Positions 6,001-53,980 of a stretch of DNA of 64,000 bases are shown here, piece by piece. Below the pieces are notes generated by a model. The model was given only the letters and a program-made list of their open reading frames with translations. It was not told where the DNA came from and searched no databases. A program made the translations under genes and the position numbers. The DNA is from Carpediemonas membranifera BICM. Taxonomy: Eukaryota; Protista; Fornicata. The stretch's first letter is position 1; the number at the start of each line of letters is the position of its first letter. The stretch lies in assembly GCA_019828565.1 (NCBI GenBank), contig JAHDYR010000012.1:1731780-1795779 (forward strand), written 5' to 3'.

Positions 6001-8832
6001 GTCTTTAACGACCTGAGTGCCCGACTCGGGTTTACAACGAGAAAGACGACGGCTCATCATCCCCAGTCGAATGGGTTAGTAGAGCGAGCGAATGTGTCGG
6101 TTAAGTCCATCCTGACAGCACGTCGTTACCAGTTTAGATCCAATGATTGGGTCCACAGCTTACCGATTGCCCAATACCTTGTTAACTCGACCCCTCGAGT
6201 CCCTACTCGACTCTCCCCAGCCGAGATCCTGTATGGCACCGAGATGCGAGTGCCAAAGGACATTACCGTTATCGCGCCGGGTGAGACGTATATCGTTGAC
6301 CAGCAAGAGGACTGGCTGTCCGAGGCCAAGGCGTACCGGCTCATGGCTGCCGAGCGCATTAAGAGCAAGCGGCTCCTACAGCAGTACAGGCCGGACGCCC
6401 GTGCCACGGTTTCGACTCCATACGTCCTGGTGGCTTACCCCGATCGACCACCCGACAAATTCGCCGCCGGCCTGCGTGGCCCAATGGCACTAGTGTCGGT
6501 GCACCAGGAGTACAACAAGGTTGTTGCCTATACTGTGCGTGACCTTGAATCTCTGAAGCAGTTCAGGGTCGACGCTTCCCGGGTCCTCCCGTTCGATCAC
6601 GGCGACATGTCCGTGGAGCAAGTTACTCGCTTGGCTAACACTGTTGCGGCCGAGTATATACCGAGCAAGATTGTGAAGTCCCGGCCCGACTCCGGTCCGG
6701 TCGAGAATCGCGAATACTTGGTTGAGTGGCTGGGCTATGAGCCGGACGAAGCTTCGTGGGAGCCATTCGAGAATGTCGATGGCTGTGACAAGTTTGAGGA
6801 CTTTCTTGAGCAGAGAGAACTACACCGTGCTGCGCACTCCAGGCAGTAAACGGATTCTCAATCAAGATTTATTGGTAGTCGTCATCGGACTCGTCGTCAG
6901 GGCCCTTGATCCAGTCCTCGAGCTCAAAGTCGATCAGATACTCGCGAGCCACGCTGACGGCAGCGAGGGTCTCGTCCAGACCAGTGCAGGTAGGGGCAGT
7001 GTAGCCCGCGTACTGAACGTGAAGAATGAGTCGGCGGTCGGATCCAGCCGTCAGGATCTCGTGACCCAGCACGTCAAGGACCTCGTACTCGCGCTCAGGG
7101 TCAGAGACCTGCATGGCCAGACCGAGCCGCTCCGGCAGGGACGGAAGCTCGTCCATGGCGCGGAGGTTAGCGACCAGGGCGGCCCAGTGAGTGGCGGTGA
7201 CTGAGACGTTCTCGCTACGCTCCCCGTGGAGGAACAAGCGGTAGTAGTCTGGGGCGAGGGCCAAGACGGCGACCCGGTACAGGGTGCGGCGGGCCAGGCT
7301 CTGGCCGCAGCCGAGAGCGCGGGAGAGCGAGAACAGGGTCTCCGGGGTGACGTACCTGTTTGAGCCGTTGCCCTTGAGATCGAAAACGCCGGCGTCAACG
7401 GCGTCGCGGACTATGCCGGAGTCGGTTTCGGCACGGCTGCGAGACGCCTCCCGCAGGAAGCGGAGCGCACGATGCTCTCGCTGGAGCTGGACCAGCAGGC
7501 CGGCTGACAGATCGAGCAAGCCGCCTGCGTCCTTGCTCCACAGCGTGCCGGTGGAGAGGTGATCGAAGATCCCCTCGAGGGGCACCTCAACGAAGTTAAC
7601 GTAGCCAGCCAAGCACCGTCGAACCACATCGGCGAGCTGGTCTGCCTGCTTCGTGAAGCACCCCTCCATCACACCCCCCACCGGCACACGGCAGAGCTCC
7701 CGAGCGGAAGTTGCCGGCACGGTGAAGATCCTAGGTAAGAAGAATAGAGGCGCACAAACCGCATCATGGGCATCTGGGAGGCATTCCCGCCGCTCTTGCG
7801 GATGGCCCTCTTCTGCAGGGCGCTCATCGTGCGGGCCTTATAGCGTTGCGTCCGAGCAATCGTCGCAAGGGCATTTTCGAGCACCTTGCGATAATCGTCA
7901 TCAGTTAACTCCATCGAAAGCTCACGAATTTGGTCGAGCGCACGCGTATCCGCCATGTTTGGCCGCTTTTCCTCAGGAAAAAGCGACATATCCTGCACTT
8001 TTCCCAAATGACGAATGGAAGTGCCCATAGTGATCCCCATGACGGACTATTCACAATATTTATATCTCAAACACAGTCCACGAGACTTCTACCGTCCGTG
8101 GAGCAGTGCTTATGATGTTGGTTAACTTTCGGTACAGCGCAGAACAAAAAGAGCCAGAACTCGCCAACGAAGCCGAATTGGGGCTCGAAAACCCCTTTTT
8201 CGGGCACTGTGTAAGAATGGGGCGGATCAGCCCAACGTACCAGAACTTTCTGTATGAGCGATGGCGAAATGCCTAAAAATGCTCGGGGCCAGAATTCCCG
8301 AGTCGAGCGCGAGCCCCAGAGTGCCCGCGAGGGGGCGGGGCTGTGGTACGTCCTTTTTATACTTATACAGGAGCTCCTGAACCCATATCTTAATTAGCAG
8401 CGCTGCATAGATCTTTTCCGAATCTTTTTGATATCATCCTCGAATCTTTCGGTCACACCTTACTACGCGTAATACCTCACCTGGAGGTTGCAATAAGACG
8501 TAATCCCAGAAGTTGGTTGTCGTTATCCCGTCGATAATTCCAATAGTGGTTCGGCATGAGCGAGCGTAATCCCAAGTTCGATTGGTGGCTCTAGCCCCAC
8601 GTAATACCAGATGTTGGTTGTGGTGATGGCCGCGCGACTGCTTGGCCATGGGGGGGAAGTGTAGTCAGTATTAATATCTACCAATATCCCTGGGAGGGTC
8701 CAAACCTCTTTTTACTCGTAAACTCTTTCTCTTCCAAACCACAGTTGTTTGGAAATAAGTTTTCATCTGATCGGTGAACGCCGCCCAAAGAACGAGATTT
8801 CGTTCGTGCGGGGCGTTAATATCGATAGTCAT
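1..8832 (-). CDS. A1 Gag-Pol (interrupted by B1; +1 frameshift near 680; continues past window start)
   Basis: ATG 8832 MTIDINAPHERNLVLWAAFTDQMKTYFQT joins in frame across the B1 insertion to TTRPDPLRHFLT (ORF 620..2734); removing one base near 682 restores ATEPLVYTMPTAEELYERCRGAEIFAVFDLTSGFHQ. Confidence 0.85.
2710..2793 (+). repeat. 5' LTR of B1 (84 bp)
   Basis: TGTAGTCAG...AACCACA, identical to 8660-8743. Confidence 0.97.
2810..6849 (+). CDS. B1 Gag-Pol: Gag, 2x CCHC, aspartic protease, RT, RNase H, integrase, chromodomain (one 1-bp frameshift near 3117)
   Basis: CYNCGGKGHFSPEC/CEKCGREGHKREFC, LFDCGA, YIDD, TDAS...EQE, HHCC and D-D-E integrase, GPY-like RGPM, C-terminal EYLVEWLGYEPDEASWEP; ORFs 2810..3121 and 3163..6849 join if one C is restored. 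Confidence 0.95.
6869..7956 (-). CDS. B1 antisense gene, 2 exons (7956-7760, 7730-6869), about 352 aa, C-terminal chromodomain-like module and acidic tail
   Basis: 29-nt intron 7731-7759 (GTTTGT...CTAG) joins ORFs 7669..8040 and 6869..7720 in frame (197+862=1059 nt); homologous to B2 antisense gene; EYEVLDVLGHEIL...LILHVQYAGY. Confidence 0.8.
8158..8180 (+). promoter_or_regulatory. Conserved non-coding motif AACTCGCCAACGAAGCCGAATTG upstream of B1 antisense gene
   Basis: Recurs at 53966-53980 (B2) and as reverse complement at 60318-60340 (B3), each about 190-200 bp from the antisense ATG. Confidence 0.6.
8660..8743 (+). repeat. 3' LTR of B1 (84 bp)
   Basis: Identical to 2710-2793, preceded by PPT. 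Confidence 0.97.
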
Positions 8833-8856
8833 TACTTTGTTTGCTGGAGAAGCTTC

Positions 8857-8912
8857 TGTAGTCTCAGTAGACTTCCGAGTGATCGGGGGTGTGCACTTTA
8901 ATGATCGCTACA
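8857..8912 (-). repeat. 5' LTR of A1 (56 bp)
   Basis: TGTAGTCTC...GATCGCTACA, positioned like the A2/A3 LTRs relative to gag; partner LTR lies outside window. Confidence 0.75.
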
Positions 8913-8916
8913 CACA

Positions 8917-8966
8917 TGTGGCACTGTGTGAACTAAAAGACAGGATGCAGTTTATGTCGTGCTACA
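8917..8966 (-). repeat. 3' LTR of A2 (50 bp)
   Basis: Identical to 13506-13555. Confidence 0.97.
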
Positions 8967-8990
8967 TTCCCCCCTAGAGCCGGCACATCA

Positions 8991-11900
8991 TTAGCGGCGG
9001 GGGCGCGGATGGTTGCGCGTGGTAGCTTCGAATCGCTTACAGGCGCGATCGAATTGAGGATGCTGGTCTCGATACTTAAGCAGGGCATCAAGTGTCATAC
9101 AGTCGGAGAAGGCGAGCTCTGAGTCTTCATCGTGCTCGAAGCCAAGCCAGTTCACCGTAACGATAGGCTCGTTGGTCTGAGAATCCAGTCTGTACTGGAC
9201 CACATGGTCGACAACCTTCCAGTTGCTGTCAGCGGTGAACGCTCTGGCCGCCTCGGCCATCGTCAGCGTCGGGCCCGTGTTGGGCAGCTTGGCCAAGCGG
9301 TCGGCGAAACGGATAATGGTCTTCCTGGTGACAGGATTGACGAGGACATAGGAATCGGGCTCCTCACCGTTGCCTTGAACGTAGTAAGGGCCTCTCATAG
9401 TGTACTGCAGTCTGGAGATGGGCTTGTCGCGCTTGACGAGCACCCAGCTCCCCAGAGGCAGGCTGGTGAAGCGAGCGGAGGGATAGTACTGGTCTTTCAC
9501 CCCCTTCTGACGGAGTTGGAACTCCTGGAGCTTACCGAGTACTTCCGCAGCGTTCTTCATGGTTTCATCGGTTATGGCAGTGCGAGTCGAAGGCTCGGCA
9601 TTCTTAACTTGGTGGTAGGCGAGTGCAGCAGCGAGTGCAGCTTCACGAGGCGTTGCACCGCCTAAAACTCTGGATGGCGTGGCGTTAATGTTGATTTCAG
9701 CCTGTATCATAGCTGAACGCCAGCCTGCGCGGGAGCAGTCAGGCAAAGAGGATAGTGAGATGCGGAGGTGCTTATTCACCTCTCTGTTCGTTCGCTCAAC
9801 GAGTGCATTACCCTCGTGGCGCTCGGGCGTCGTGTTATGGTGTATGATCCCGAATGTTGCGCAGAAATGGTCGAACTCCGCGTTGCAGAATTGTGTTCCA
9901 CTGTCGGTAACAATGGTATCTGGGCAGGCCCATCGTGCGATGATCTGCGAGCGAATTGCTCGGATGGTGGACCGCGCATCTAAAGTCTTGAGTGGGATCA
10001 GGTGAGTCAGATGAGTCGCGCTATCAATGCACGTCATGATGTACCGATAACCGTTGTCCGGTCGGTCGATCGGTCCCACTGTGTCGATGTATAAGGTGGC
10101 GAGTGGACGGGCAGGCGGGAGATGGCCCGGGTTGTAAGCCACGTTCGGCGTCGCTCGGTCTCGTTGGCAGGTCACACACCTCTTGATCATCTTGTCGACA
10201 TCGGTCCTGGCGCTTGCCCAGAGGAGACCTGCCTTCTCGAGGAGGGCGAGGGTGGTCTCGAGTCCGGCGTGGTGTCGATGGTGCACCATGAGGAAGCGCT
10301 CGCGCTTCTGCGTCAGTGAGACCCGATGTGGCGATGACGGACATTACGAACGGCAGGCGGCTCAGCCCGTCAGCGGCGGTGTTCATGTCGCCCGGTACGT
10401 GGACGATCTCGGTGACCGGGAACCGTGCGATCTCAAGAGCCCAGCGTATCACCTTGGGCGTATCCGAGCTAACCATCTGTACGAGGCAGCTGTTGTCGGT
10501 GTGCAGTATCGTCTCGGTCCCGATCAGTTGTGAGCGGAAGCGCTCAAGGGCAGAGTATACCGCAAACATCTCCTGTTCGACGATCTTCCAGACCTGTTGT
10601 TGCTTGTCGAAGCGCCTGGAGTAGAACGCGAGAGGGCGGTCGCCCTGCATAAGCACTGCGCCAATGCCGGTGGTTGAGGCGTCAGTATAGAGGTCCACGC
10701 GGCTGTTGGGGTCGAAGTGCGTCAGCTCGATCTGTCTGGCGACAGCTTGCTTGAGGCTGGTCATAGCCCACTCGAGCTGCTCCGGCTCGACGGTCTCACC
10801 GTTCTTCAGTGCTTCGAGCGGTGCGGCGAGGCGGATGAAATCTGGGATGTGCCTCCTCACAAAGCCGAAGATGCCGACAATGTGATGGGCCATCTTGGCA
10901 GTGCGAGGGGTGCTGAGCTTATGTATGCTCTCGACGCGGGCAGGGTCGATGCGGACACCGGTGCCGCTGACGAGGCAACCCAGATAGACGATCTCCTTCA
11001 GTCCGATGTGCGATTTCCGACCAGAGAGGCGTATGCGGTGCTGCTGGAGGACAGGGAATAGCTCGCGGAGGACATCGAGGAGCTGCTGGACAGAGCCAGC
11101 GAAGCACAGTATATCGTCTACAAACGCCAGGCATGGGAGCTTATACTGGCGGCGTAGGTCGTCAATGCGTTTCTGGAACGCCATGGGGCCGTTGGTGACA
11201 CCGAACGGAAGCCTGTTAAAGATATAACGGACGTCGTCGAACTCGAAGCCTGTCAGTTTGGCTGAGTCTGGGTCCATAACGAGCTGGTGAAAGCCAGCGG
11301 TGAGGTCGAATGAGGCAAAAACCTCGGCACCTCTGCATTGCTCGAACAGTTCATCTGCTGTGGGCATGGTGTAAATCTCAGGGCGCGTAGCGTCATTGAG
11401 GGCTCGGTAATCTAACACGGGCCGGAACGGGGGTGTAGCGGACGGCTTGTCCACCATAAATACGGGCGACAGCCAGTCGAGGGTGTCGGTCGTTGCCGAG
11501 ATGATGTTCTTGGCCAGCATGTCATCAATGAAGAGCCGCATGGCGTCCTTCTGCGCCTTATTTCTGATCGGGCGTAGAACCTGGGAGGGGAGGACGTCGG
11601 GCTTGAGGTGTATCTCAAAGGGTGGCAGATCGGAGCCTTGCTCGTCGAACGGGCCGAAGATGTCGGCGTACTCTACCACGAGCGCATGGAACTGCTCGGC
11701 GAGCGAGCCGAGGTTCTCATCGTATATAGTTGGGAGTGTCGGGGTTGACTCTCCGGGTGACCTGATGAAGAGGTTGAACAATGAGCGGAAGTCCGTAGGA
11801 TCTTTCGTCATGGATGGGGTCGACTCGGGCTTGGCCCGGTTGTTCTTGAGGAAGTCCATACCCACTGCGCGGAGGGCAACGGTGCCGTATAGCACAGCGA

Positions 11901-13480
11901 CAGGTAGGTCCTCTACGATATAAGCCGCGAGGGGCTCGGCAGCGCGGACGGGTATGTCGAAATAGGGCTGCGAGATGATCGGCGTGAAGCGTGTGGTGCC
12001 CACGTATTCTCCATGGACAGCCTTCCAACCATTGACGTCGCCGCGCTCGGGCGTGACTGTAAGGCCAAGGTACTCCGCCGCGTCGGGGCGCATGAGGATC
12101 GGGAACTGCTCGTTCGCCGTGTCCAGGCGCACGACGATGGCCTTGCCCTTGGATTCGGCTTGCATGAGAGCCTGATAGACCATGGTGCTCTCGGGCATGT
12201 CGGTCATGAGGGGCTCGACTTGATCGTCAGGGATGAAGGAAACCTTGCCGGGCCGCGGGGCACGCTTGACGGTCGCGGCGGCAGTCCCATAGGCCGGCTC
12301 CTTCAGCTTGCGCTTATCGAATAGCGCCTTGGCCGGGCCGTAAGGTTTCTTCCCGTGCTTATGGCAGGTGGCATAATGAGAGAGCAACTGGGCATCGGTA
12401 ACGTCCGGGTTCTGGACGGTCTTGTCGGTCAGCTGCTTACAGACGGTACAGTCCGCCGTGGTGTGCGTCTTGCTCAGGTGGAACGCGCATGACTTGCCGG
12501 ACGAGCCAGCGGGCTGGACTGGGCCCTGGCCGGGCTTCCTCGCCTCGGCGGCTGTCGGTCTGGCATGATCAAATGTGTATAGGGGCTCGATAAACTCCGC
12601 CTTCTCCTTAGCGAGAATCGCGTTATCGCGCATGGCGTTGATGAGGGTGCTGACGCTTTCACTCGCCCTGTGGATGCGATGATCGGACGTGCCTAGGAGC
12701 TGCTCCAGGCTCCTGGCGTCGAGGTGATCCATGGCGTGGACAAGGATCGTTTTGATCTCGATGCACAAGTCCGTGGATAGTTGTGGTGTCTCATCTGAGT
12801 CGTCAGGGAGGGTATAGGAGCGTATAAAGTCGCTCGAACTCGGCCAGGTAGGTGAGGATTGCTGAGAGCGCCTCCTGGCGCGTCCTGCGTGGACCAGGGC
12901 GGGACAGTGCCCTGAGTGCGGCTTTGCACTTCTCATCTCCAATGCTTGCACTCAAGCGGAACCACTGCATGAAGTTTTGTACTTGTCTGCAGATGACCTG
13001 GGAGAGTGTCATATTAGTCGTGTTAGTGGAGGAGGAGGCGTTGGCGGTCTTGAGCTTCTGACGGAGCTCCATCCGTAGGGTTCTGAGTTCCGCCTTCATG
13101 GGTCCCACTTCGTCCTTGAGGGTCTCGTCCTCTTCCGACATGGCGATGAGGGCCTGTAGATTCTCTATTTGTGACTGAGTGTGTCGTGTATCTGCTGACG
13201 TGGTCGTGAGAGGCTTGGAGAGGAACTCCTCAATTTCGTCACCCAGCCGTTGGAGGAACTTCTGAGGACCGGATTGATGTTTCAGCTCGGTGCCCTTGAG
13301 CGTGATATAGGGCACGTTGGGTCTATATATGGTGTGTATAACCTTCTCGCCAGCGCCAGTGAGGTGTCCTCTCAGGGGCGTGGGTTTCTTCTTCGTTTGG
13401 GCTTGCGTCTGAATTGCATCGCCCCAAGCGGCCCATTTTGCGATATCCGCAGTGTCGGGCGGCTCAATAGTCTTGTCCAT
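8991..13480 (-). CDS. A2 Gag-Pol with terminal chromodomain (1-bp frameshifts near 12810 and 10310)
   Basis: ORFs 12803..13513, 10024..12951 and 8991..10289 tile Gag (CAFH knuckle), PR (LDTAN), RT (FVDD), RH (YTDAS), IN (HHCC, DTVG/TDSG/ERTN, RGPY), chromo (WKVVDHVVQYR...VNWLGF). Confidence 0.93.
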
Positions 13481-13505
13481 GTGTTCTTGATGCTGTAGAA
13501 GCTTC

Positions 13506-13555
13506 TGTGGCACTGTGTGAACTAAAAGACAGGATGCAGTTTATGTCGTGCTACA
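13506..13555 (-). repeat. 5' LTR of A2 (50 bp)
   Basis: Identical to 8917-8966. Confidence 0.97.
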
Positions 13556-13561
13556 CACATG

Positions 13562-13612
13562 TGTGGCGTTAACTGAATGAAACTTCCAGAGGTGCACTTT
13601 ACGTCACTCACA
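13562..13612 (-). repeat. 3' LTR of A3 (51 bp)
   Basis: Identical to 22803-22853. Confidence 0.96.
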
Positions 13613-13634
13613 CTCCCCCTCAGATCACGCCACT

Positions 13635-16600
13635 CTACTCAGAGCGACTCTGGGAGGAGGTCTCAAAACGCTTACAGGCATCCGCGGCAGCGGAGTTGCC
13701 GGCAATGTACTTGACGAAGACGTCATTCGTCTTCAGATCTGCGGCGGCGTACCACTCGTGCTCATCCGAGTCGGTACCCACAAACGCGACATGGAACTCA
13801 GGCTCACCTGTGGCACGGAGGCGCCAGTCGTGAATAGCCTCAACGACGGCGAAGGTGGAGTCCGACATGAAATGGTGACGTGCTTGCTCCCGGGTCAGCG
13901 GGTGCGCAATACGGAACAGGCGGCTGGCGTGGCGGCGCACAACCACGTTGGTCACGGGGTTGAGCAAGGAGAAGGTGTCGTGCTCGTCAATAGACTCGAC
14001 ACGGTACGGGCCCCTCATCCGGAACTCCAACCGAGGAACGGGGCTGTCTCGGCGTACAAGGACCCAATCTCCGACTTGCAGGCTGTCGAACTTGTTCGAG
14101 GGGAAGGCTTGATCCTTGATCTTCTGGCGACGCTCTCTCTCCCCCTCAAGCCGGGCGAGGACAGCGATGGCCGCCTGCGACTCGGAGTCCGTTGGCGTGA
14201 CCGGAGTCTTGGGCATATGGTGCAGGGCAATAGCGGCGATGGCAACGGCGTATGGGGTTTGGTCGCCCAAGCGCTTCCTACAGGTTGCGTTCAGGTTCCT
14301 CTCCGTCTGCGCGAGGAGATCTACCCAGCGGCGTGAGTCGCCAATCGTGCTGGAACCGATGCGCAGCTGCGCATTGACTTCCTTGTTCGCTCTCTCGACG
14401 AGGCCATTGGCCTCATGACGGTAAGGTGTAGTCACGTGGTGCATGATGGCGTGGTGTTGGCACAGTTGTTCAAACTCTGCGGCGACGAAGCAGGGTCCAC
14501 CGTCAGTTTGAATACGGTCCGGGACTGTCCAGCGTGCGAAAATCTCACGGCTGACGGCTCTGCATACTTCACGGCTCGAGGTCGACTTAAGCGGTATCAG
14601 CCACGTAAAAAGCGACGCGTTATCGACAACTGTCAATATGTAGGCAAACCCTTCATCGGCCGGTGTCACGGGGCCAATGATGTCCATGTGCATGTCAGCC
14701 AAGATGGGGGCCGACGGGATGTGGCGCTCTGCGAACGGGACGTTGGGCCTAGCTCTAGCCTTTTCACAGGTTAAGCATTTTGCGATGCGGTCCGCAACCC
14801 AGCGGTCAGCGCCCTCCCAGTACGTACCGCGAACACGCAATAGCTGGAGGCAGGTGCCTAAGCCGCTGTGGTGACGGTCATGTACTGCCTTGAAGCGCTC
14901 CTCCTTAGCCTCCTCACTCAGCTGGTCTGTGACGAAGACAAGAGGTTGCGGCGGGGGCAGGCGAGATAGACCGTCGGCAATGGCGTTGTCAACGCCTGCG
15001 ACGTGGTGGATCTTCATGGTGCCATACTGAGCGCATTCGAGCGCCCAGCGGATGACCTTGGCGTTCGTGGCCGCAGTCATATAGACAAGGTTCGCATGGT
15101 CGGTGTGGAGGTGGATCTCCGATCCCAGTATCATGGGTGCGAAGCGTCGAAGCGTCGACACAAGGCCGAAACACTCCTTCTCGGTCGTGTTCCACGAGCG
15201 TTCATGGCCCGTGAATCGTCTGCTGAAGAACGCGAGCGGTACATCCCGTCCTTCATTCTTCTGGATGAGCACCGCCCCGACGGCGATGTTCGACGCATCA
15301 GTGAATACGTGAACTGGCTCGGCTGGGTCAAAGTGAGCCAGCTGGATCCTGTTGGTGATGAGGCTCTTGACTTCGCGCACGGCCGCGGCGATCTCATCGG
15401 CATCGACTTTCTCCTTGTTCGTCAGTCGCTGGATCGGGTCGACGACATCTGCGAAGCGGGGAACGAAACCGCGGAGGTATCCCGTGATACCGCTGAAGTG
15501 GCGTGCCTCCTCGGCGGTGCTGGGGACTGGTAAAGCGTTCACGTCCTTAACGCGCTCGGGGTCAACGAGGATACCATTCGGGGTCAGCTGGAACCCGAGG
15601 TACTGGACGCGGTCTGAGCCGATCAACGACTTCTTCCCTGCGATACGGACGCGGTGCTCCCGGCAGATGCGAAGCAGCCCGCGGAGCAGTTCGAGCAGTT
15701 GTGCTTCCGTTCCTGCGAACAACAGGACGTCATCAATGTACAGCGCACATCCTCCCTTGAGCGACTTCAGGAGTGACGCGATACGTTGCTGGAATACGAC
15801 AGGGCCATTGCGGACCCCGAAAGGGAGTCTGTTAAAAACATACTCTTTCGACAGATGGGCGAAACCCGTAAGCCTCTTGGCTTCCTCAGTCAGCGGCAGT
15901 TGATAAAATCCAGACGTGAGGTCAAGCGTTGCGAAGACAGTTGCCCTTTGAGCTTGGGCGAAGAGTTGCTCCGGCGTGGGCAGTGCCGCTCTCACAGGCA
16001 TCGTGACAGCGTTCAGAGCTCGGTAGTCGAGCGTAGGGCGGAAGGGTGGCGTGGCTCCAGGCTTGGGTATCAAGTTAAGCGGCGTGAGCCACTCAAGATG
16101 CTCAGCAGGCGAGATGACACCGAGCTCCAAGAGCTCTTCAATGATGGTCGAGGCAGCATCGCTGCGGGTCCGACTCATTGTGCGTGGCGTAGCGCGGTAA
16201 GGGGTGGCCCCCGGCATCAGCTCGATGTCATACGGCGGCAGAAGTGCTCCGCGGCGGTCAAGCGGGCCGAACACATCTGTATATTCCTCGATCAGGTGCT
16301 TGAATGCGACCGGATCTTGGAGGCAGTCACCGATTTGCGGCAAAACCGGCGGCTTCGTGTATAGCACAGCAAGATCCTTCACGTCGGCCACGTCGTGGAG
16401 ACTGACATGGGTCGGCAGGGGTGTGCCATTGGGGCGTAACTCGATGTGCAGCTTTTCGAGCAGGGAGCGTGACGCGAGCGCGTCGAAGCTGATAGCGTCG
16501 GTGAAAAGCAGTCGGCTCTCCAGGGCGACTTCGTGGAACAGCGGTCCATCGTGCAGCCAGCCAGGTGCATCTCGGCTGAGGTCGAGACGGGCGATGGCCT

Positions 16601-19600
16601 TGCCCGTCCCAATGCCATGCAGGGGCGTCTCCTCCCGAACTGCAGAGGGGAAATGGTGCAGGTGCCTCGTATGGACGAGGACGTCGTGGCGTAGATTGAA
16701 CGTATCTAGGCCCAGGTCGAGGTCGACGCCGCCTACACGGAGACGGCAGAACCACTTGTTGCATGCAGGTGCTGTAGCGATGAGAGGAGAGAGAGGATTT
16801 ATAGGGTTTGACCCGGGACACAAAATTGGATAAAACTAATCGACCCGAAGGTCTACACTACCCCCATGATGTTGGTAGGCATCATCTGCGTCTGGATAGT
16901 CAGAACTTTGATCCAACCCTTAAAGTGCACGACTCTAAGTTCGAGTCATCGCTGAACGAACGTATGAAGGGATGAAGTTGGCGAAAAACTGAAAGTGGGC
17001 TCAGTTCGTTGGCCGCCCTGGGGGAATGCGTTGGCGTAGTACCGGCTATGATCAACGTGCGTGGGCGGAGTTCTCGTCGGAACGAAAAGTTGCCGTCAGC
17101 AACTTGATGTCGCCGATCACGCTGGAACTTGTGGAATAGGCATCATATCTATAAAGGAGATCAATCCTTGTGTATCTGCCTATATGCAGCAACGGGGCGG
17201 TTGTATCAACCAAAAGTTGGTGGGATAAAGGAAAGCTCAGCGTGATGAGAATGATACGGTAAGTCTGTGAAGATTCTGCCGTAACTCTGAAGATAACTGG
17301 CTTGTCGGCGTGGAATGAAGCAGTTTGGGAGAAATGCCTCTCGAGGCCTTTGTGTGCAGCTTAGTGCCGAGGGCGCTGCGACTTGCTCCGCCCCCATGCC
17401 CGGCGGGCACGCGCTAGGAGGGGTATGACCTCTGGATGTGACCCGACATAACGGTCGAGGGCTTCAAGCTGATCTAGCTCTCGGGAGAAGGGCTCATCTG
17501 TGGACTCTTCCGGCTCGTAGTTGAGCCATTTGATGGTGAGAAACAGACGATTATCGTTGTCTAAGTGATGGTCAACGATGGCTTCAACTAGGTATTCGCC
17601 GGTCTGCCGCGTGGCGTACTCCGTGACTTCATCTCGTGTGAGCTTGGTGTAGAATGGCGTCAGGCGGTCCGCGTGGACGGTGAAGGTGGCTAGGGACACC
17701 AAGTCTTGTAGTTCATACGTATTACGGATAGTTCCCGCCCCCACAACCAGCAATGGGCCTCTCACACGGCGATCGAGCTTGGAAGGCTTGCTGGTTGGCC
17801 ATAAGAGGACATAGTCGTCGGCTTGGAAGCTCTGACCACTCTTCGGACGTCTTTCTTGCTGGGCTACGAGCATTTCCTCCTGTATTTGCGCCCAATTGTT
17901 GATGTCGGCGCGGAATTGTTCAATCTGCGCGGCAATGTGCGGCTCACTAGCGAGCGTTGTAGGATCCACCGGTGTGAAGTTCGCGTTAAAACAAAAGCTT
18001 CAGTGGGGACAATTTGCTGCGAGTGTTGGGTGTCGCGTTGAGGATATAGGTGACGGCCGGGATTAGGCTGGGCCACTCCGTCTTGTCTTGCCGGTTGTCG
18101 AAAAGCAGTGACCTCATATACTTAATGATCTCCGCGTTCTGGCGTTCCACTATGCCGTTGGCGGCTGGGTGGTAGGGCGGGGAGAAGCGGTGGGATAAGT
18201 CGAGACGTTCGTGGAGCTCGGCGATGGCCTGGGCTGTGAATTGAGTGGCGTTATCGGACTGTATCTCCTTAGGTCTGCCGAAATTGGCGGACCAATCGCG
18301 GATGGCAGCGGCAGCGGCGCTCGCCGAGCAAGTCACTGTGGGGTAAAGCTTAGTATACTTGCTGAAAGTGTCCACAAGGACTAGGAGATATCTCTCGCCG
18401 GTGTCGGCAACAGGGAGAGGGCCGAGCGTGTCTATCTGAATCCGCTCGAATGGAGCACTGGCGGCGGTGCGTCCCATGGATGTCTGTGCGGGCTTCGTAG
18501 GCCTTGTCAGCTGGCAGGTAGGGCAGGTGGAGATGACACGTCGAGTGTCGGCTACCATGCCTTTCCAAGTGTGGCCTGCCTCTCGGAGGTGCTCTACAAC
18601 GGCCCTATATCCGACATGGCCTCCACGTCGGCCGTGGAAATGCATAATTAGCTCCTCCCGTTCGGAGGGAAGTAGCGTGACAGATAGAAGGCGACTAAGT
18701 GCGTCGGCGGCGCCGTTGTCGGCGCCGGCCACATGCACAATGTCGAAGTCGTATGTCTGAAGCTGCAGGCGCCACCTCTGGACCTTGGGTGCTGTGGCGG
18801 TGGCCATAAAGACCAGATTACGGTGGTCGGTATGCAGTGTGAAGTGGCGACCCCTGAGAAAGTGTTGTGCCTGAGCAATCGCTGATATAATAGCGAAACC
18901 TTCTTGTTCATAGGTAGACCACCTACGTTGGACGGGGGTCAGAGTCTTGGAAAAATAGGAGACGACTTTCATCTCCGAGCCGGTCCCGGTAGTGAGCACC
19001 GCACCTATGCCTATGTCGCTGGCATCAGTAAACAGGTGAAGGGGCTGGTTTGGTTTCGGGTGGGCCAGGACCATGTTATCCAGGAGGGTCTCCTTGATCC
19101 GCTCGAGGGCTTGCTGTTGGGGGGCCTCCCAGCGCCACGCGACGCCGGATCGCGTTAGTGCTAGGATCGGCTCAGCTGTCACAGCGAAGCTCGGTATCAT
19201 CGGGCGGAAATAGTTGACGAGACCTAAGAGGCTGCGTACCTCAGAGATGTTTGAGGGGGCCTTGAGCGTGCGGATGGGTTCGAGACGATCGGTCGAGATG
19301 GATTTCCCTTCCGCGGAGACATGCCATCCGAGATAGTCGATGCTTCGGGCTGCGAGGATGGTCTTCTTGGCGTTGATCCGAAGGTTGGCGGCGTCGAGCC
19401 GTTCTAACACATCCCTCAGATTGCTGATGAACTCATCTTGGTCGTTACCGAAGACAACGATGTCATCAATGTAGACCAGCGCTCTTATGTAGAGAGCGGG
19501 ACCCAGGGCTTCCTCTAGGCATCTCTGGCAATGTATTGCGGCGTTCCGGAGGCCGAAAGGCATCCGTAAGTACTCGTATTTCTTCCCGGCAGCAACAAAT

Positions 19601-22600
19601 GCAGTAATGGTTCTTGCTGTATCAGTGAGTGGGATTTGAAGGAAGGCCTTGGACAAGTCTATTGCAGCGAAAAACTGCTTTCCTTCCAGGGTTCCCACGA
19701 GGTCATCAATGATAGGCAGGGGGTGCTCGTCAGGTCGGGTAATCTCGTTGACCCGGCGGAAGTCAAGGCACAGTCTTATTGTCCCGTCACGCTTGGTGAC
19801 GGCAACGATTGGGGAGTTGAACTGCGACTCTGAGGGTTGAATGATTCCAGTTGCCTCCTGCTCCTCAGTCTGCCGGCGAATTTCTTCGAGGACAGCGGCT
19901 GAGTAGCGGTATGGTGGGCAGTTGGTGGTCATTCCTTCCTCGAGGACAATGTCGAAGGGTGTGACCTTGGCTGGCGTGGCTGTCAGACCGCCGAACAGCT
20001 CAGGAAAGCGCCTTTGAAGGGCCTCGACTTCTGAAGCTAGCTCGGGCACCAGGCACTGGGGCTCCTGGTTATCGTCGGTCTCTATGACGTTGAGGTCCAC
20101 GTCCACCTCGCTGTCAGTGTCAGAAACGTCTGGTTCGCCCATATCAAAGCGAACGACGCCTAGCTCGTTAAGAAGTGGATAGCCAAGTACAAGTGGATGG
20201 GATAGCTGATCCAAAACTAGGAGGGGGCCAACGCCGTGAGTTGGCGCCCCGATGTCTTACAAACTCCAAGGTCGAGCTCCAGTATGGCTTCCTGAGCGGC
20301 TTTCATTATTTGGCCACTGCCAAACTGGACCTTGCGAGTCGTGGGCCGTACCGAGATTGGTTTGAGCTGCTCCAGGAGCTCGCGGCTAATAAAATTCGCT
20401 GTGGCGCCTGTGTCAAATAGCGCGCGGACACATGGCATCCCTGGGGTCGACACCGAGAATACGGCCTGCGGTGTCACTCTCTCTGGACCAGGCAAGGGAT
20501 CTATCGTCAACAGCTCAAAATAGGATGCCCGTTTATTACGGGGCTTCTTGTCACGCTTAGCGAAACAGTGGTCTATGTCATGGCCGACCTTGCCGCAGAA
20601 GGAACACGTAGGGCGCGGAGCCGCGGAGTGGGCGTTGGGGCCCGGGCGTTCAGCGGCGCGTAGGCGGTCCCCCTCGCGGGTGACCTGTTCCACGTGCCGA
20701 GCCTGCTCTATGGCGGCGCGGAAAGTGGCGTCTAGGTCCCGGCGATCCTGGTAGGTTAAGACGCGATCGCGGAGGCGCTCCGGCTGGATGTGCTGCACGA
20801 AACAGCGGACGAGTTGCTTGATTGAAGGGCGAACATCGCCGCAGTTCTCAAGCTGCGTCTGATATGCATGGACGTAACGGAGAACGTTGTCCTGAAGGGG
20901 ACCACGAGAGTGGCAGGTAATCCGCTCGAAGCGGTCAAGGGCTTCTCTGCGGTCGATGGGCTGGAAGAGAACGTTGATGCGGCGTAGGATGCGCGAGGAT
21001 TCGGCGTCCTCGGGGAAAACGGGAAGAGGATCAGGAATAGGTGCTTCGTCCTCGGTGTCATCATCCGTGGCGTCTTCGAAGTCTTCGTCGCTCTCATCGT
21101 CCTCCCTCAGCAACAAGGGCGTTGCGAGCGGGATCAGGAAGGGATTCTTTGAGAGCGGGGTCACGGAGAGCGAAGATTTGCCATACCGTACGGCCAATCA
21201 AGTGCTTAATAGGAATAGCACCGCCTTTGGCACGGTACGCGTAATAGTTCTCGCGGAATTCCTCCCACTCTTTCTGAGTAGTCTTGGTGAGGAAGGGGGC
21301 CATAAACAGGTCAATTGACTGGAGCTGATTCATCTTACTAGGTACCAGTAATTACTGTAGCGATGAGAGGAGAGAGAGGATTTATAGGGTTTGACCCGGG
21401 ACACAAAATTGGATAAAACTAATCGACCCGAAGGTCTACAGGTGCGAAGCGGGTCCGGACTGCTTCTTCGGCGAGAAACAGTGCCTTCTGACGGGTGCGG
21501 TCGGCCGCTACATCCGCGGTCCTGGAAAGGTCGATCTTGCGGCGTTCGGCCTCAGCTCGGACCTCCCTCATCGGCTTCCAGGCCGGGTAGTGTGTCTTAC
21601 ACTCACGGGCGTGCGCGACAATCTGGGCGTCAGATAGCTTGTCAATGCCCTTAACGAGGTCGGGACAGGAGTTGGTGCTGTGGTCTTTTGCAGCTGGGTG
21701 GAATGCGCAGACCTGGCGAGGAGCCTTCTTCGGCTTGGCATCCTTGGTCTCACGGTCAACCTGTGCGCTGGTTTCGGCGGGTACCTTAGCGGGCGGGGCT
21801 CTGCGCGCGTCACCCTCGGTGTCGTTGTGCTGGGTGCTCCGGGCGCTCTGGGCGGCATGGCCTTCAAATTCCCGGATTTCATCGCGGTAGCTACGAAGCT
21901 TCGCAACCAGCGCGGTTGCTCTCGACATCAGGTCGTCGAGGCAGAGACTGCCGTCGAAGTACGTTGTGGCGCCCTCACCGAACAGGCGGGTGAGAGCGAG
22001 AGGGGGGGCGTTCATGTGGGTGAGGATAATCTTAATCACGGCGGCGTTGATTTCCTCGCTCACAGCGGGTGCGGCATCGTCGCCGGTCTCGGCGAGGAGT
22101 GCGGTGTAGTTGTAGTCTCGGAGCGTCTGCTGAACTTCAGCGAGATACACGGCGGCATTGTCGATCGAGAAGTGCTCATGGCCTTTAGGCTTGCGCGACA
22201 GTTGGCGGAGCGCCACCTGGAGCTGTTCTGCGGGCGTCGCAGAGAGTGTCCGACCGACAAGGTCCCGCAGCCTGCGGGCCTGCTCAACCAGAGCTGCCTT
22301 TTGTTGCGCTCGCGTCCCGTGCGGGAACACTGGCTTGTAAGGCTTGATGAGAAGCATGCCGCGGGCGGCCTTGAGCTCCTCCAGCTCAGCCTCGGCCTCG
22401 GCACAGGTCTCGACGGAGGCTTCGTCGGTGCGGGCCTTGAGGAGTCTAATACCCTCCTCGAGCTGATCCATACGCTTCTTCCCTTCTTCTAAGGGGTCCT
22501 GATCGGGCTTGGGCTTCTTGAGGGTGTACGGTTCGGCTTCGGTTGATAGGAACGTCAGTAGGTCCGTGTGCGTTCGGAACTTGCGGGCGTCGGAGCCATC

Positions 22601-22780
22601 AAGTGGCAGATATGCGGCTTCCTTACTACGCAGCAGCGTTGTAAAGAAGTCATGATGTGCGGGCGTGAACAGGCTTGCCACAGGACACAGAACGTCCTCG
22701 GCTTGTAGGTAGTGCTGCAGCGACTCTACAAAACCATTCCAGACGGACAAGTCATCTGAATTGGGTAAGAGTGGTTTCAT
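13635..22780 (-). CDS. A3 single Gag-Pol ORF split by C1 insertion (22780-21441 + 16767-13635)
   Basis: MKPLLPNSDDLSVW...CAFHPAAKDHSTNSC...RTRFAP joins in frame to ACNKWFCRLRVGGVDLDLGLDTFN; RT YIDD, RH FTDAS, IN DIIG/TDGG/ERAN, RGPY, chromo-like end. Confidence 0.93.
16773..16857 (-). repeat. 3' LTR of C1 (85 bp)
   Basis: Identical to 21356-21440. Confidence 0.97.
17361..21333 (-). CDS. C1 Gag-Pol with chromodomain (1-bp shifts in homopolymers near 21105, 20225, 17990)
   Basis: CSFCGKVGHDIDHC, LFDTGA, YIDD, FTDAS, HHCC/DDE integrase, RGPL, EYLVEAIVDHH...IKWLNY across ORFs 21094..21333, 20217..21197, 17986..20214, 17361..17969. Confidence 0.93.
21356..21440 (-). repeat. 5' LTR of C1 (85 bp)
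   Basis: Identical to 16773-16857. Confidence 0.97.
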
Positions 22781-22802
22781 TGTTGTTGGCTCAACAAGCT
22801 TG

Positions 22803-22853
22803 TGTGGCGTTAACTGAATGAAACTTCCAGAGGTGCACTTTACGTCACTCACA
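22803..22853 (-). repeat. 5' LTR of A3 (51 bp)
   Basis: Identical to 13562-13612; abuts PRP31 ATG via the CATG TSD. Confidence 0.96.
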
Positions 22854-22854
22854 C

Positions 22855-23940
22855 ATGAATGTCAGTGATATCGATGTGGACGCTTTATTTGACAGTATTG
22901 AAGACTCTTCCGATACTGAAATGCAGCAAGAAGACGAGCTTCAGCTTCATGAAACACTAGATCTTGCGGTTGTCGAAAGACTTGTCGAGGAGTCTTTATC
23001 TTCAAAATCAAGCCTTTCCTCAGCGCTTTCACTGCAAAGACGTTTGAGACAAAGTCTTTTTGCACTGCAGGCGAGGCTCATTGGCCTGATCTCCTCCGCG
23101 ATCCCAGAGTACGACCGCCTTACACCCCCCGAGCTCACCACCCGCCAGTTCGTCCATGTATGCGCCTGCTACATCAACGGCCGGGATATAGACACGCTTA
23201 TAGACCAGGGAATTCTCAGTGAGCCCCAGGCAGCGCTCAGTCGTCTCGTGGTCCTCCGGGCACCCTCGACACCCGCCCCCTCACCGCTGATAGACGACAT
23301 GGCACGGTTCGCAGACGCCCTGGAGAATGCTGTCATACGACTTGACGACTGGCTTGCAAGTGAGACATTGGCTCGTTATCCCAACATTTATAATTTCCTG
23401 GCAAACCCAAGAGTTGCAAGTGTTCTTGCATCCTGCGTGCAGGACGACGAGGCGGGGCGGGTAAACCCAGGCGACGGGTTTGCACGACGCACTACAGGCC
23501 AGATCAAGATGGTGGGGAAGGCTTATAGACTATCGCAGCGAAGAAAGCCGCAAGGTGGGGTGCTCGCCGACATTGCGGCAGACATTGTTGAGGAAAACGG
23601 TCTAGATGAAAAGAAGATGGGCAATAGGATTCTGACCAAGCTCGCTAACAAATTCAAGCTCGTGGCAGCGGTTGACATCGCGTGTACCGATCCAGAGGGA
23701 AGTTTTGGTCAGAAGACGCGCGACCAGGTTCTTAAGGCATTCGAGAACTCCCTTGCTCCAAATCAAAAGATTACTCAACGCCAGCTGAAGATAGCGATGC
23801 CCGGGGATAAGAAGAAGCACCGCGCCGGCCGCAAGTACAATGCTCGCCGGAGACGAACCCAGATGACCGCTGTCCGCGAGCGGGCCAACCGGGTAGCCTT
23901 TGGTCAAGGATCGTCCTATGCGGCAGAGGGCATGGTGTGA
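22855..23940 (+). CDS. PRP31: U4/U6 snRNP protein Prp31 (Nop domain), divergent
   Basis: Nop-domain pattern (LANKFKLVAAVD...GSFGQKTRDQV) followed by Prp31 C-terminal motif KKKHRAGRKY...MTAVRERANRVAFG. Confidence 0.85.
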   Translation: MNVSDIDVDALFDSIEDSSDTEMQQEDELQLHETLDLAVVERLVEESLSSKSSLSSALSLQRRLRQSLFALQARLIGLISSAIPEYDRLTPPELTTRQFVHVCACYINGRDIDTLIDQGILSEPQAALSRLVVLRAPSTPAPSPLIDDMARFADALENAVIRLDDWLASETLARYPNIYNFLANPRVASVLASCVQDDEAGRVNPGDGFARRTTGQIKMVGKAYRLSQRRKPQGGVLADIAADIVEENGLDEKKMGNRILTKLANKFKLVAAVDIACTDPEGSFGQKTRDQVLKAFENSLAPNQKITQRQLKIAMPGDKKKHRAGRKYNARRRRTQMTAVRERANRVAFGQGSSYAAEGMV

Positions 23941-24237
23941 GCCCGACGATGACTGAAGCTTTGTGGCCACAGACGGTGTCAACCCTCATTGCCGTTGTTT
24001 AAACTGCACACTCCATTTACTATGTACCACAGGTTAGTCCACGAGAACGCCCTCCTCGTTGAACTGTGACCTTAAACTGCACCGTCCAATTTTTACTGTA
24101 TGTGTTCAACATGAGCCCTAACAGGGGCCATAGTCAGCCTAGTCGATTACTGACACTGGATGCCGCTCAATTAGAGGCAGAATAATTTGTTGGAAAAAAA
24201 ATGATCCTTTTCGCTCGGTTATTCAGTACAGTCTCAT

Positions 24238-24663
24238 ATGGCAACTAAGGAGATCGTTCTTCCCACCGTTCCCGCCGGAAAGGAGGTGGTAGCTGTTTGC
24301 CACCTTTATGCTTCCTACAACGACACCTTCGTCCACGTTACCGATCTGTCTGGCAAGGAGACGCTTTCCCGCGTCACTGGTGGCATGATGGTGAAGGCAA
24401 ACCGCGATGAGTCTTCTCCCTACGCCGCTATGCTCGCCGCCCAGAAGGTTGCTGAGCGCCTTCAGCAGCTTGGCGTTACTGCCATCCACATCAAGCTTCG
24501 CGCTACCGGTGGTGTCGGTTCCCGCTCCCCCGGCCCCGGTGCCCAGTCCGCTATCCGCGCTCTTGCTCGCACTGGCCTTAAGATCGGCCGCATCGAGGAT
24601 GTTACCCCCATCCCCACCGATAGCACCCGCCGCAAGGGCTCCCGCCGTGGTCGCCGTCTTTAA
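24238..24663 (+). CDS. RPS14: 40S ribosomal protein S14 (uS11)
   Basis: [21 protein letters not shown]...[12 protein letters not shown]...[25 protein letters not shown]. Confidence 0.99.
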
Positions 24664-34277: not shown

Positions 34278-36131
34278 ACGCAATGTTCATAAATGGGTGA
34301 ATTTATGCTAACCAGTGACGGGATCCACAGGGAAGTTGACCCCCATCCAGTCCGGGTGCCGGCCGTTTACAGTGGGGTCGGACGTCAGGCACAACAGCGG
34401 CAGTGGCGGCAATGTGAAATTGTGCCTCCATCGCTCTTCGTGTAAAGCCGAATGACAAGCTGCCATAGCTTCTTCTTAGTGGTTAGCTGCTTAATTGTGG
34501 CTTCGGCGCCGTTGGACGAGCTACGCTGGGGGAACGACACGTTGACGTGATCGACTATGCGGTGGCCGATCCACTTGGACGAAGCGTCTGGGCCGGAGCC
34601 CTCAGTCGAGGCGGCGTTGTCAGGAAGGAAAGAAAGAAAAGAAAGAATTTAATGTGTCCTGCTGTGTAAGCTGAATGTCACAGTTTGTGTCACCCCTTCG
34701 AGGAACGCCTAAGCGTGTTGGTACCTCTACAGAGCACACCTAACACTTCCTAAGAGGGCGTGAACAACGGCCGTCAAGGCCTAGCTGGTACGCTAGAGGG
34801 ATCCTATACATGGCCACATTAATACCCCCAAAGTTAGGCTAACCCAGGTCTTACTCTTAGGGGCCCTTTGGGTCCCAGGTCTGCCTGGCACCTACAAAGC
34901 CTTGCCCTGCACGCTGCTGTCAGGGACCTTCCGTACGTTTCCCCTCTCCCCCGGGTCCCCTAGGGAGGTCCTGGGGTTTCCTCGACCCGCTCGCCATGTT
35001 TCAGGCACCCGCCAGGGCGGGTTCGGGTCTAGAGTTCGCCGTACCAGCTGGGCCGGGTTAGGAACCCACCGACGCCGCGTAGGTAGACTTCCACGGACTT
35101 GCCGGCTGCGTTCGGGCTCATCTAGCGCTGTCCGATTTCACTCCAGGTTCCCATTATCGGGGGGAGCTCCCAGGGGCGGTTGCCACGTCTTCCAGTGTTC
35201 CTGGCTAGGCGCCGGGCCACATCAGGATGGCCCTGCCTTCCCGGCAGGTTACCGACGGAGTGGGTAGCTTCTTGCGTCATCCAGTACCTCCGCCAGTCTG
35301 CCATGCATCATCCTCCTGGTGCGCCCCCACTGTGTGGGGAGGGGGTACCCCCTTGCGCGCCGGAGGGATGCGCCGGACCGCTTGTCCGGACGCTTGCGCC
35401 CTACTGGCCCAGCTGTTTTGCCAGGCCTTCCCTATTTCGTGCTTGTTGTATGCGATTGTCCCTTAGTGGTCCTTTGCAGCCTTCCCTCCGCCTGGCGCTA
35501 CCGGAACATGGGGTGTTGTCCTCATTGGTTCCAGGCCCGCTGCGCTTGGGGTCGGTGCTCGGGCCACCTTTCCAGGCCGCCCTGTGGGTTGGGCCTGTCC
35601 CCTCTTGGTGGTGGGGGAGTTGTTTCAAGTGTGGTGCAGGCATCAGAGTGCTCCCTTGCTGCGTGGGTTGGGTTGGGTGTGCGGCCGGGCGCTACCGGAA
35701 CATGTGGGGGGAAAACACCTCCCGCCGGTTCCAGGAGTGTTCCGCCCTGTGCCTTGTCTTCACCCAGGGCCTTCCTCCTAGGGGTCTGGGCCTGTTCTGA
35801 GGTTCATGAGGGCCTTTTTCCCGCATAATAGACCCTCCTTCACTGTTTCATCCTCCTGTTGCAGTAGCCAGTGGAGCTCCAATATGGCCCTGGAGTTATA
35901 CCACTCCCCATCTGGGCCGTGCCGCAGCCTACTTGCCATGGTGTGTGTTGCCGCAGCTTCCCAGCACTGCTCCCACCCACTTGGGCGGCCGACGCCCTGG
36001 CACTCCGCTATGATGTGGCTTTGTGTTCCTAGCGGTTGGTCTTCCAGCCACCCGGCTACTGCCACTAGCGCCTGCGCCTGGGGGGGGGTATAGTTGGAGG
36101 TAGTTGATCAATTCGCGTTCGGCTGCGAGTG

Positions 36132-36243
36132 TGTGGTGGTCATAGACCACACTAATCATTTATACAGTTTAAGCCATTTATTGGCACAAGGGTTTTCTCG
36201 TCTTCTTTCCCTGTAAAAGCATTCTCCGCATTAGCGAGGCACA
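36132..36243 (+). repeat. 5' LTR of B2 (112 bp)
   Basis: Matches 54533-54644 with one substitution. Confidence 0.96.
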
Positions 36244-36263
36244 TTAACGTTAATTCCCCTCAA

Positions 36264-40192: not shown

Positions 40193-40234
40193 ATCTTCAC
40201 CACATCTAATCGCTCCAGCGTCAAGTCATCAGAT

Positions 40235-53774: not shown

Positions 53775-53965
53775 CAACTGAGTTGACGGCGACATATTCT
53801 GCACTTTTGGAACAATCGGTTTCAGGACGAAACCTAGAGCAGTAATAGGACGCCAAATCAAGCTAATTCATCTATTTACTAAGCGCTGTAGCCTATTAGC
53901 TCCATCGGAAGCCGATTGATGTTGTTAATGAAGTACGAGCGCGCCAGGAAAAATGAAAGGCCCAA

Positions 53966-53980
53966 AACTCGCCAACGAAG
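53966..53980 (+). promoter_or_regulatory. Conserved motif AACTCGCCAACGAAG upstream of B2 antisense gene
   Basis: Identical to first 15 nt of 8158-8180. Confidence 0.6.

Follow-up and report, generated by a model that had tools for sequence, protein, structure and literature searches.

Base-pair-precise targeting by long terminal repeat (LTR) retrotransposons is known for genes transcribed by RNA polymerase III (Pol III), where it has been described for Ty3 and for elements of Dictyostelium. Ty3 of Saccharomyces cerevisiae, a member of the Ty3/gypsy superfamily, integrates a few bp from Pol III transcription start sites via TFIIIB. For promoters of RNA polymerase II (Pol II), only broad targeting preferences are known to us, such as those of murine leukaemia virus (MLV) and of Tf1 from Schizosaccharomyces pombe, a chromovirus that is directed to Pol II promoters and whose integrase contains a chromodomain. 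Here, we describe a stack of Ty3/gypsy-type retrotransposons of approximately 4.6 kb, termed A elements, which ends at the start codon of a PRP31-like gene of Carpediemonas membranifera, an early-branching member of the Fornicata that is related to Giardia. The stack is located in a 64,000-nt stretch of the genome (G000:C1:1731780-1795779; hereafter the window, to which coordinates refer), and the preceding 9.8 kb (L001) was also analysed; the genome comprises 24,237,836 bp in 69 contigs. The published assembly is given as 24.2 Mb in 69 contigs with an N50 of 905.8 kb and a GC content of 57.1% (PMC8516963 Table 1). Our results make it likely that A elements aim their integration at a fixed spot downstream of an 11-nt motif, and that the copy of this motif in their own LTRs re-creates the target.

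Like Ty3, the A elements belong to the Ty3/gypsy superfamily, their position appears to be set to nearly the base pair by a promoter-bound landmark, and the sequence of their target site duplications (TSDs) varies. In contrast to Ty3, the landmark lies upstream of protein-coding Pol II genes, and insertion between the motif and the ATG replaces the 5' untranslated region (UTR); moreover, the A LTR itself bears the landmark, which leads to head-to-tail stacking, and the orientation bias is strong. With Tf1, the A elements share the superfamily, a chromodomain-type integrase tail (putative in the A elements), an apparent preference for Pol II promoters, the sparing of open reading frames (ORFs) and a compact host genome (see also PMC4600332). 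Whereas Tf1 inserts at Sap1 or nucleosome-free sites in a broad window, some 100-400 bp in front of ORFs, and has LTRs of approximately 350 bp, the A elements use a window of approximately 4-8 bp at a fixed distance from the 11-nt motif, inside the 5' UTR, and have LTRs of only 43-56 bp. The Dictyostelium elements TRE5-A, DGLT-A and Skipper-2 are similar in that they insert in a position- and orientation-specific manner by a transcription unit of a compact protist genome and form nested or adjacent clusters at one landmark. The tRNA-gene-targeting elements of Dictyostelium differ in their landmarks, which are Pol III genes, upstream or downstream of which they insert at approximately 15-50 bp, and we know of none that gives the flanking gene a replacement promoter. 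In C. membranifera, several diverged families strike the same narrow window set by a Pol II promoter-like motif, and the 5' UTR of essential genes, for example PRP31, is replaced while the gene stays unbroken.

Positions 1-22857 of the window consist of minus-strand retrotransposon sequence nearly throughout, up to the ATG of the PRP31-like gene. An earlier note, made from the sequence alone, had described three stacked elements in this region, A1, A2 and A3. The stack is real but contains four elements, as a further one, A0, was found on the upstream side of the window (-6499..-1810, identical 51-bp LTRs, TSD CATG/CATG). All four are on the minus strand, with neighbouring LTRs 4-6 bp apart. 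A0 was met upstream, where the promoter or additional stacked elements had been predicted; the CACA predicted at the 3' LTR of A1 is not present, and the CATG found there is the right TSD copy of A0. The different LTRs, diverged proteins and common orientation reported for A1 to A3 were confirmed, with exact LTR pairs where the note had placed them and protease, reverse transcriptase (RT), RNase H and integrase (PR-RT-RNaseH-IN) on the minus strand. The same holds for the spacers CACA and CACATG and, judged from the flanks, for the TSDs CACA of A2 and CATG of A3, the right copy of the latter containing the PRP31 ATG. The stack is composed of the following features:

-1805 to -1750 (L001 7975-8030, upstream of the window), minus strand: 3' LTR of A1, 54/56 identical to the 5' LTR.
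1 to 2709, minus strand: internal part (pol) of A1, protein match to A2 pol at C1:1731375-1733865.
2710 to 8743, plus strand: Ty3/gypsy element nested in A1, with 84-bp LTRs in direct repeat and TSD GTTG (2706-2709 / 8744-8747).
8744 to 8856, minus strand: 5' internal end of A1, with the primer-binding-site-like palindromic block AGAAGCTTCT adjoining the LTR.
8857 to 8912, minus strand: 5' LTR of A1, 56 bp, with the outward motif GTGCACTTTAA at 8891-8901 on the plus strand.
8913 to 8916, no strand: spacer CACA, right copy of the 6-bp A1 TSD (CACATG, reaching into the first TG of A2) and left copy of the A2 TSD.
8917 to 13555, minus strand: A2, 4,639 bp, with identical 50-bp LTRs (8917-8966, 13506-13555) and flanks CACA/CACA.
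13556 to 13561, no strand: spacer CACATG, in which the right A2 TSD copy (CACA) and the left A3 TSD copy (CATG) overlap.
13562 to 22853, minus strand: A3, with identical 51-bp LTRs (13562-13612, 22803-22853) and flanks CATG/CATG.
16773 to 21440, minus strand: B-type Ty3/gypsy element nested in A3, with identical 85-bp LTRs in direct repeat and TSD GGTGC.
22854 to 22857, no strand: right copy of the A3 TSD, CATG, which includes the PRP31 start codon.
22855 to 23940, plus strand: PRP31-like ORF of 361 codons, with Nop and Prp31_C matches, both near the Pfam curated cut-offs.

On the plus strand, the motif is also present in the LTRs of A2 (ATGCAGTTTAT, at 8945 and 13534) and of A3 (GTGCACTTTAC, at 13592 and 22833), and the copy at 22833 begins 22 nt before the PRP31 ATG. 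This ATG is located 1 nt past the edge of the A3 LTR, and the ORF is intact from this first ATG onwards. The element nested in A1 codes for PR, RT, RNaseH, IN and Chromo domains in the ORF 3163-6849, the chromodomain being Pfam-positive, and the B-type element in A3 has PR/RT/RNaseH/IN in ORFs at 17986-21197; without these insertions, A1 (4,676 bp) and A3 (4,619 bp) are in the same size class as A2. To the left of A0, 45 bp (...TTAGAATGTGCACTTTATGTCGTCTACAAACATG) that carry the motif and terminate in ...CTACA are followed by the LTR of a B-type element. These 45 bp may be the native PRP31 promoter or the tail of an older LTR and thus of a fifth stacked element.

Upon removal of the elements, the emptied site reads ...GTGCACTTTATGTCGTCTACAAACATGAATGTC and not ...CACATGAAT, as the earlier note had it. 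Starting from the emptied site ...GTCTACAAACATG|AATGTC (...AAACATG|AAT) and inserting the natural element sequences, a replay of four ordinary integrations returns the observed 29,558 bp exactly, in the steps A0 (TSD CATG), A2 (CACA), A3 (CATG) and A1 (6-bp CACATG). The CACA of A2 is composed of the terminal CA of the A0 LTR and a further CA, and the CACATG of A1 of the CA of the A0 LTR end, a CA and the TG of the A2 LTR start. Because the replay reproduces the observed bases exactly, all four insertions can be regarded as ordinary integrations inside a 6-bp interval. A0 was inserted first and A2 before A1, and A3 may have come before or after A1. TSDs of 4, 5 and 6 bp were also seen at further copies of the same families. 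The unmatched flanks of A1 had been considered as a sign of a two-copy recombinant or of an unprocessed 'CA' end; both ideas were dropped, as the 6-bp TSD CACATG replays the sequence exactly.

Flanks were obtained for 22 A-clade insertions in the genome, and the 3' flank is known for 19 of them. The motif was defined as GTGCA(C/G)TTTAT (11 nt) and the distance d as that from the motif start to the first LTR base. Thirteen of the 22 insertions lie 24-31 nt downstream of a motif, 11 of them with at most two mismatches and 2 with three. On the 3'-LTR side and on the strand antisense to the element (gene-sense), a motif with at most two mismatches was found at a d of 25-31 in 10/19 copies (25, 25, 25, 26, 26, 26, 27, 27, 28 and 31), and one more copy has a motif with 3 mismatches at 25. 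In two copies of the family with 43-bp LTRs, the motif faces the 5' LTR from the opposite side, again at 25-26 nt, and the distance is therefore the same in both orientations. The usual configuration, with the element divergent from the gene, outnumbers the opposite one by 11 to 2. Motifs with up to two mismatches have a background frequency of 2.9e-4 per position-strand (537,140 position-strands analysed), and a binomial estimate for 11 of 22 insertions within a 7-nt window on either side is approximately 1e-20. When the insertions are mapped relative to both landmarks, the motif and not the ATG emerges as the reference point: the motif distance, for the most part with a spread of approximately 3 nt, is 24-28 nt in 12/13 cases, and the distance to the next ATG varies from 1 to 24 nt.

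The TSDs at copies elsewhere (TCACGA, TTGATG, AAATT, CCAATT, GTCTC, ACAGT, CTAG, GAGTT, CGTCG, AGCCG and GGCCG) have no common word. As in Ty3, a fixed position relative to a promoter-like element is thus combined with unrelated TSDs. The nested chromodomain and B-type elements are not located at motif sites, which assigns the motif-targeted behaviour to the A clade. These data support the suggestion of the earlier note that different families independently hit the 5' end of a Pol II gene by strong site targeting and left the ORF intact, and the insertions are not randomly placed in the genome, an outcome that would have contradicted it. Among the three cues it had offered, a CA-rich sequence does not agree with the unrelated TSDs, and the other two, a transcription start complex and the end of a resident LTR, prove to be one and the same, namely the 11-nt motif found at host genes and at LTR edges.

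The LTRs of six A-type families cannot be aligned with each other apart from a single block, [G/A]TGCA[C/G]TTTA[T/A/C], which is always on the strand antisense to the element, facing outward, and located 22 nt from the LTR edge, or 15 nt in the 43-bp family. As each insertion brings in an outward motif, the target is re-created 4-6 bp beyond the 5' LTR, which explains the stacking. In the stack, A2 is located 24 nt from the motif of A0, A1 26 nt from that of A0 and A3 28 nt from that of A2; counted from an LTR motif, 24-28 nt corresponds to 2-6 bp beyond the LTR edge, in exact agreement with the spacings of the stack. We propose that the intasome is tethered to a factor or an initiation complex bound at the motif, which would make it a Pol II counterpart of Ty3, and that the staggered cut would span roughly +19 to +27 from the first G of the motif. 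In the usual orientation, the 5' LTR sets a fresh motif at a near-native distance from the displaced ATG. The motif-to-ATG distance after and before insertion is 22 versus 24 nt for PRP31, 25 versus 22 nt for the gene on C54 and 41 versus 38 nt for the gene on C67. The LTR motif could hence act as a replacement promoter and presumably keeps the displaced gene expressed. For the PRP31 stack, this mechanism would place A0 at the upstream motif, A2 at the LTR motif of A0, A3 at the motif of A2 and A1 again at that of A0.

The exact motif occurs 1,103 times in the genome compared to 7 times for the reversed control, and 9 times in the window compared to 0.75 expected. Approximately 40% of 40 sampled motif sites are in repeated families and the rest are unique. 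The motif is found 22-59 nt upstream of several host start codons. Beyond the 5' LTR at motif-associated insertions, the first ATG is 1-24 nt away and opens a long ORF, as in the following cases:

A2, C67: ORF of 887+ codons, Sec16-like (Pfam).
A2, C54 (first copy): ORF of 605 codons, no Pfam match.
A1, C28: ORF of 248 codons, RabGAP-TBC (Pfam).
43-bp-LTR family, C1:157k: ORF of 251 codons, no Pfam match.
A3, window: ORF of 361 codons, PRP31.

At the genes targeted by insertions, the native motif-to-ATG distances are 22-38 nt. Two independently sampled motif sites precede a NEPRO_N protein, whose ATG at +30 is the true N-terminus (profile position 5 aligns at residue 4), and a histidine phosphatase (His_Phos_2), whose ATG at +59 is probably the true N-terminus. 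Judged from these sequences, the motif probably serves as a core promoter or initiator from which very short 5' UTRs result, and such a reading would fit what is known of Giardia. In Giardia, which is related to C. membranifera, promoters also show an inherent bidirectionality (PMC1885649). A test of directionality via mirror-image ORFs was uninformative, as it covered 18 sites in the analysed loci, most of which are already disrupted by elements. A literature search yielded nothing relevant on Carpediemonas retrotransposons or retroelements, promoter motifs or transcription signals.

One might speculate further that the whole clade is a Pol II analogue of Ty3, whose integrase, tethered to the initiation complex on the 11-nt core promoter, cuts the DNA at the transcription start or right beside it, that the LTR of 43-56 bp is a portable promoter firing outward or in both directions, so that every hit gives the host gene a new promoter, and that many host motif promoters are LTR relics. 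We hold this extended model tentatively and consider it somewhat less probable than not.

Several observations weigh against motif-directed integration as we propose it. For 9 of the 22 insertions no good motif is found at the expected distance, and approximately 5-8 further A-clade copies are outside the sample, which does not include those at C6:683059, C10:111284, C34:84768, C40:58247, C68:375412, C54:840824 and C45:36928. When 35 sampled motif sites were examined for a downstream ORF, the enrichment was modest (34% compared to 15% at random positions), and the exact motif is found inside coding regions at three sampled sites (pyruvate kinase, family-A DNA polymerase and dynein heavy chain). 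A 43-56-bp LTR with an outward motif would also have to accommodate U3, R and U5, a promoter for the sense transcript of the element and a poly(A) signal; a palindromic GTGCAC core and a bidirectionality of the Giardia type may account for the element's own transcription. The 11-to-2 orientation bias could result from selection rather than from the mechanism, the 45 bp upstream of A0 may be an older LTR tail instead of the native promoter, and we infer the promoter role of the motif and of its LTR copy from sequence. Some of the nine motif-less insertions abut LTRs of other elements or sit in a tandem repeat. Two motif-less A2 copies (C54:612,899-613,621 = L004 3899-4621; L008 2676-2689) are located exactly on CAAATT or CCAATT, with the TSDs AAATT and CCAATT. 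The motif at the second A2 copy on C54 is degenerate (4 mismatches, d = 24), and a 233-codon ORF starts 24 nt beyond this copy. At the coding-region sites (C1:612k, C2:387k and C3:392k; L037, L049 and L060), the motif is in each case followed by an in-frame ATG, and these copies may be due to chance, internal promoters or truncated gene copies.

The same distribution might be produced by selection only, if integration were random and only those harmless copies persisted that lie between a motif and an ATG and carry an outward LTR motif. The genome is gene-dense, with 8,300 predicted proteins in 24.2 Mb (PMC8516963), and the orientation bias of 11 to 2 would be expected if a replacement promoter were selected for. 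However, such selection should leave copies in 3' intergenic DNA and over the whole interval between motif and ATG, whereas the motif distance is fixed while the ATG distance is not, and both orientations share it. In addition, 99-99.9% identity within families leaves little time for purging, and we regard selection by itself as improbable. A different view, which we also find unlikely, is that the elements home to, or recombine with, the ends of resident A-type LTRs, so that the link to genes is secondary and the 'native' motifs are relics of old solo LTRs. In line with this, three of the four stack insertions lie directly against an LTR end, the sequence found upstream of A0 (GTGCACTTTATGTCGTCTACA) is similar to the final 16 nt of the A2 LTR, a 37-bp motif unit with 9-bp direct repeats is located upstream of the A0 copy on C10, and the C21 copy of A0 abuts the LTR end of another element. 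The insertion point, however, follows the motif and not the edge, as host motifs lack an edge and the 43-bp family has its motif at 15 instead of 22 nt. The motif surroundings at C67, C54, C16, C1:157k, C28 and C14 are without an LTR start, AGAAGCTTCT block or coding remnant, and the motif is also found upstream of ordinary genes.

The TSDs of the stack, CATG, CACA, CATG and CACATG, could in turn be taken as a sign that a CA-rich or CATG word is the target. Eleven TSDs elsewhere share no word with them or with each other, and the CA/TG content of the stack junctions arises because the TG...CA ends of the LTRs join the target once elements abut; a sequence specificity for CATG or CACA was ruled out by the TSDs of other copies, and we give this idea almost no credence. 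That repeats were mis-joined head to tail during assembly is very unlikely: four families with unalignable LTRs offer no repeat to collapse or mis-join across, every element is bounded by LTRs of its own and by a TSD that fits one common replay, and the published assembly rests on 83x long-read coverage (PMC8516963).

If integration is indeed directed by the motif, the A elements would be a natural system in which to study the reading of a Pol II initiation complex by an intasome. They would also offer a candidate definition of the C. membranifera core promoter and exemplify mobile elements that cancel out the damage they cause via promoter donation. Should the LTR in addition be a portable promoter, this would amount to element-driven promoter turnover in a minimal-promoter genome. 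As RNA-seq data and long reads of this strain were produced for the published genome, the key predictions are directly testable (PMC8516963).

With regard to the elements themselves, A1, A2 and A3 are diverged families: where they align in part, nucleotide identity does not exceed 67%, and for A3 no alignment was obtained. Copies of the same family share 99.0-99.9% identity, the value for A1 (without its nested element) and the C28 copy being 99.0%. By protein search and a pattern search for the block adjoining the 5' LTR, approximately 25-30 copies of the clade were found genome-wide. The Pfam order in the A2 and A3 ORFs is RVT_1, RT_RNaseH, rve, Integrase_H2C2, and the A elements have the protease-RT-RNase H-integrase order of Ty3/gypsy. 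Their LTRs, 43-56 bp and all TGT...ACA, and the TSDs of 4-6 bp at 15 copies also agree with this superfamily, although the LTRs are much shorter than usual for it. Intact copies have a single open frame from nt 16 to approximately 4,560 of a 4,640-bp element; overall, the polyprotein frame occupies approximately 98% of the element and is open from nt 1-16 to approximately 50-80 nt short of the 3' end. The C67 copy of A2 has one open frame of 1,516 codons. The A2 frame of the window is split into three ORFs (245, 975 and 450 codons), and the C67 copy (L002 2681-7320) is 99.9% identical to it and open; A0 next to the window (L001) is also split, and the C21 copy of A0 is open with 1,532 codons. 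The observations on LTR length and on the frame include the C16, C1:157k and C63 copies (L014/L015/L016) and window 8917-13555. In the 43-bp-LTR family, the sole one seen in both orientations, the motif is near-palindromic (ATCAAGTGCAGTTTA).

A purine run (GGGGGGAA or GGAGGGGAA) adjoins the 3' LTR. The block adjoining the 5' LTR is a 10-nt palindrome without a tRNA-type TGG start. Five families have the form AGAAGCTTCT and A3 has ACAAGCTTGT, where changes on both sides keep the block palindromic. It is present in all A copies (in the window at 13494-13505, 8845-8856 and 22791-22802), and the 12-mer AGAAGCTTCTGT is found at A elements only, with 24 genome hits compared to 1 in the control. A palindrome at the position of the primer-binding site suggests unusual priming or RNA dimerisation. 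Over their last 300 residues, the integrases of five families are conserved, with a mean column identity of 62%, and a GPY/F module is indicated by an Integrase_p58_C match in A1. Pfam Chromo gave no match in the integrase tails of the A elements. A profile of the last 100 residues from five families aligns in hhalign (93.3%, E 2.7e-7) with the chromodomain of the nested element, which is Pfam-positive, and the top PDB matches of the tail, though weak (E 0.14-0.46), are the HP1, CDY and MPP8 chromodomains. By its sequence, the A clade thus appears chromovirus-like, as Tf1, with a divergent chromodomain-like integrase tail.

Downstream of the stack, the stop of the PRP31 ORF at 23940 adjoins GTGTGAG, which could be a splice donor. 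Two short TG...CA units (23962-24031 and 24065-24111) are located in the 300-bp spacer between PRP31 and RPS14 (24238-24663); both carry the motif in reverse orientation (TAAACTGCAC), GAAGCTT precedes the first, and they may be solo LTRs of A-like families. The 37-bp unit on C10 (L010 2390-2435, C10:88,390-88,435), which contains the exact motif, has its 9-bp direct repeats (CTTGATGAA) on either side and lies immediately upstream of the A0 copy; it may be the relic of another small motif-delivering mobile unit. Motif copies also occur in tandem arrays: at C1:1302249-1306057 and C3:344921-359953, convergent pairs on opposite strands, approximately 121 nt apart, recur every 1.8-1.9 kb, and at C1:954729-962325 same-strand motifs recur with a period of approximately 1.9 kb. 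A second nested cluster is present at 36131-54644 of the window and contains a chromodomain gypsy element with 113-bp LTRs and pol at 37127-40192. This element is interrupted by a 12.4-kb unit, which has 62-bp terminal repeats at 40565/52949 with the motif in sense orientation, codes for APE-endonuclease and RT ORFs of the non-LTR type and shows a strong positive AT skew.

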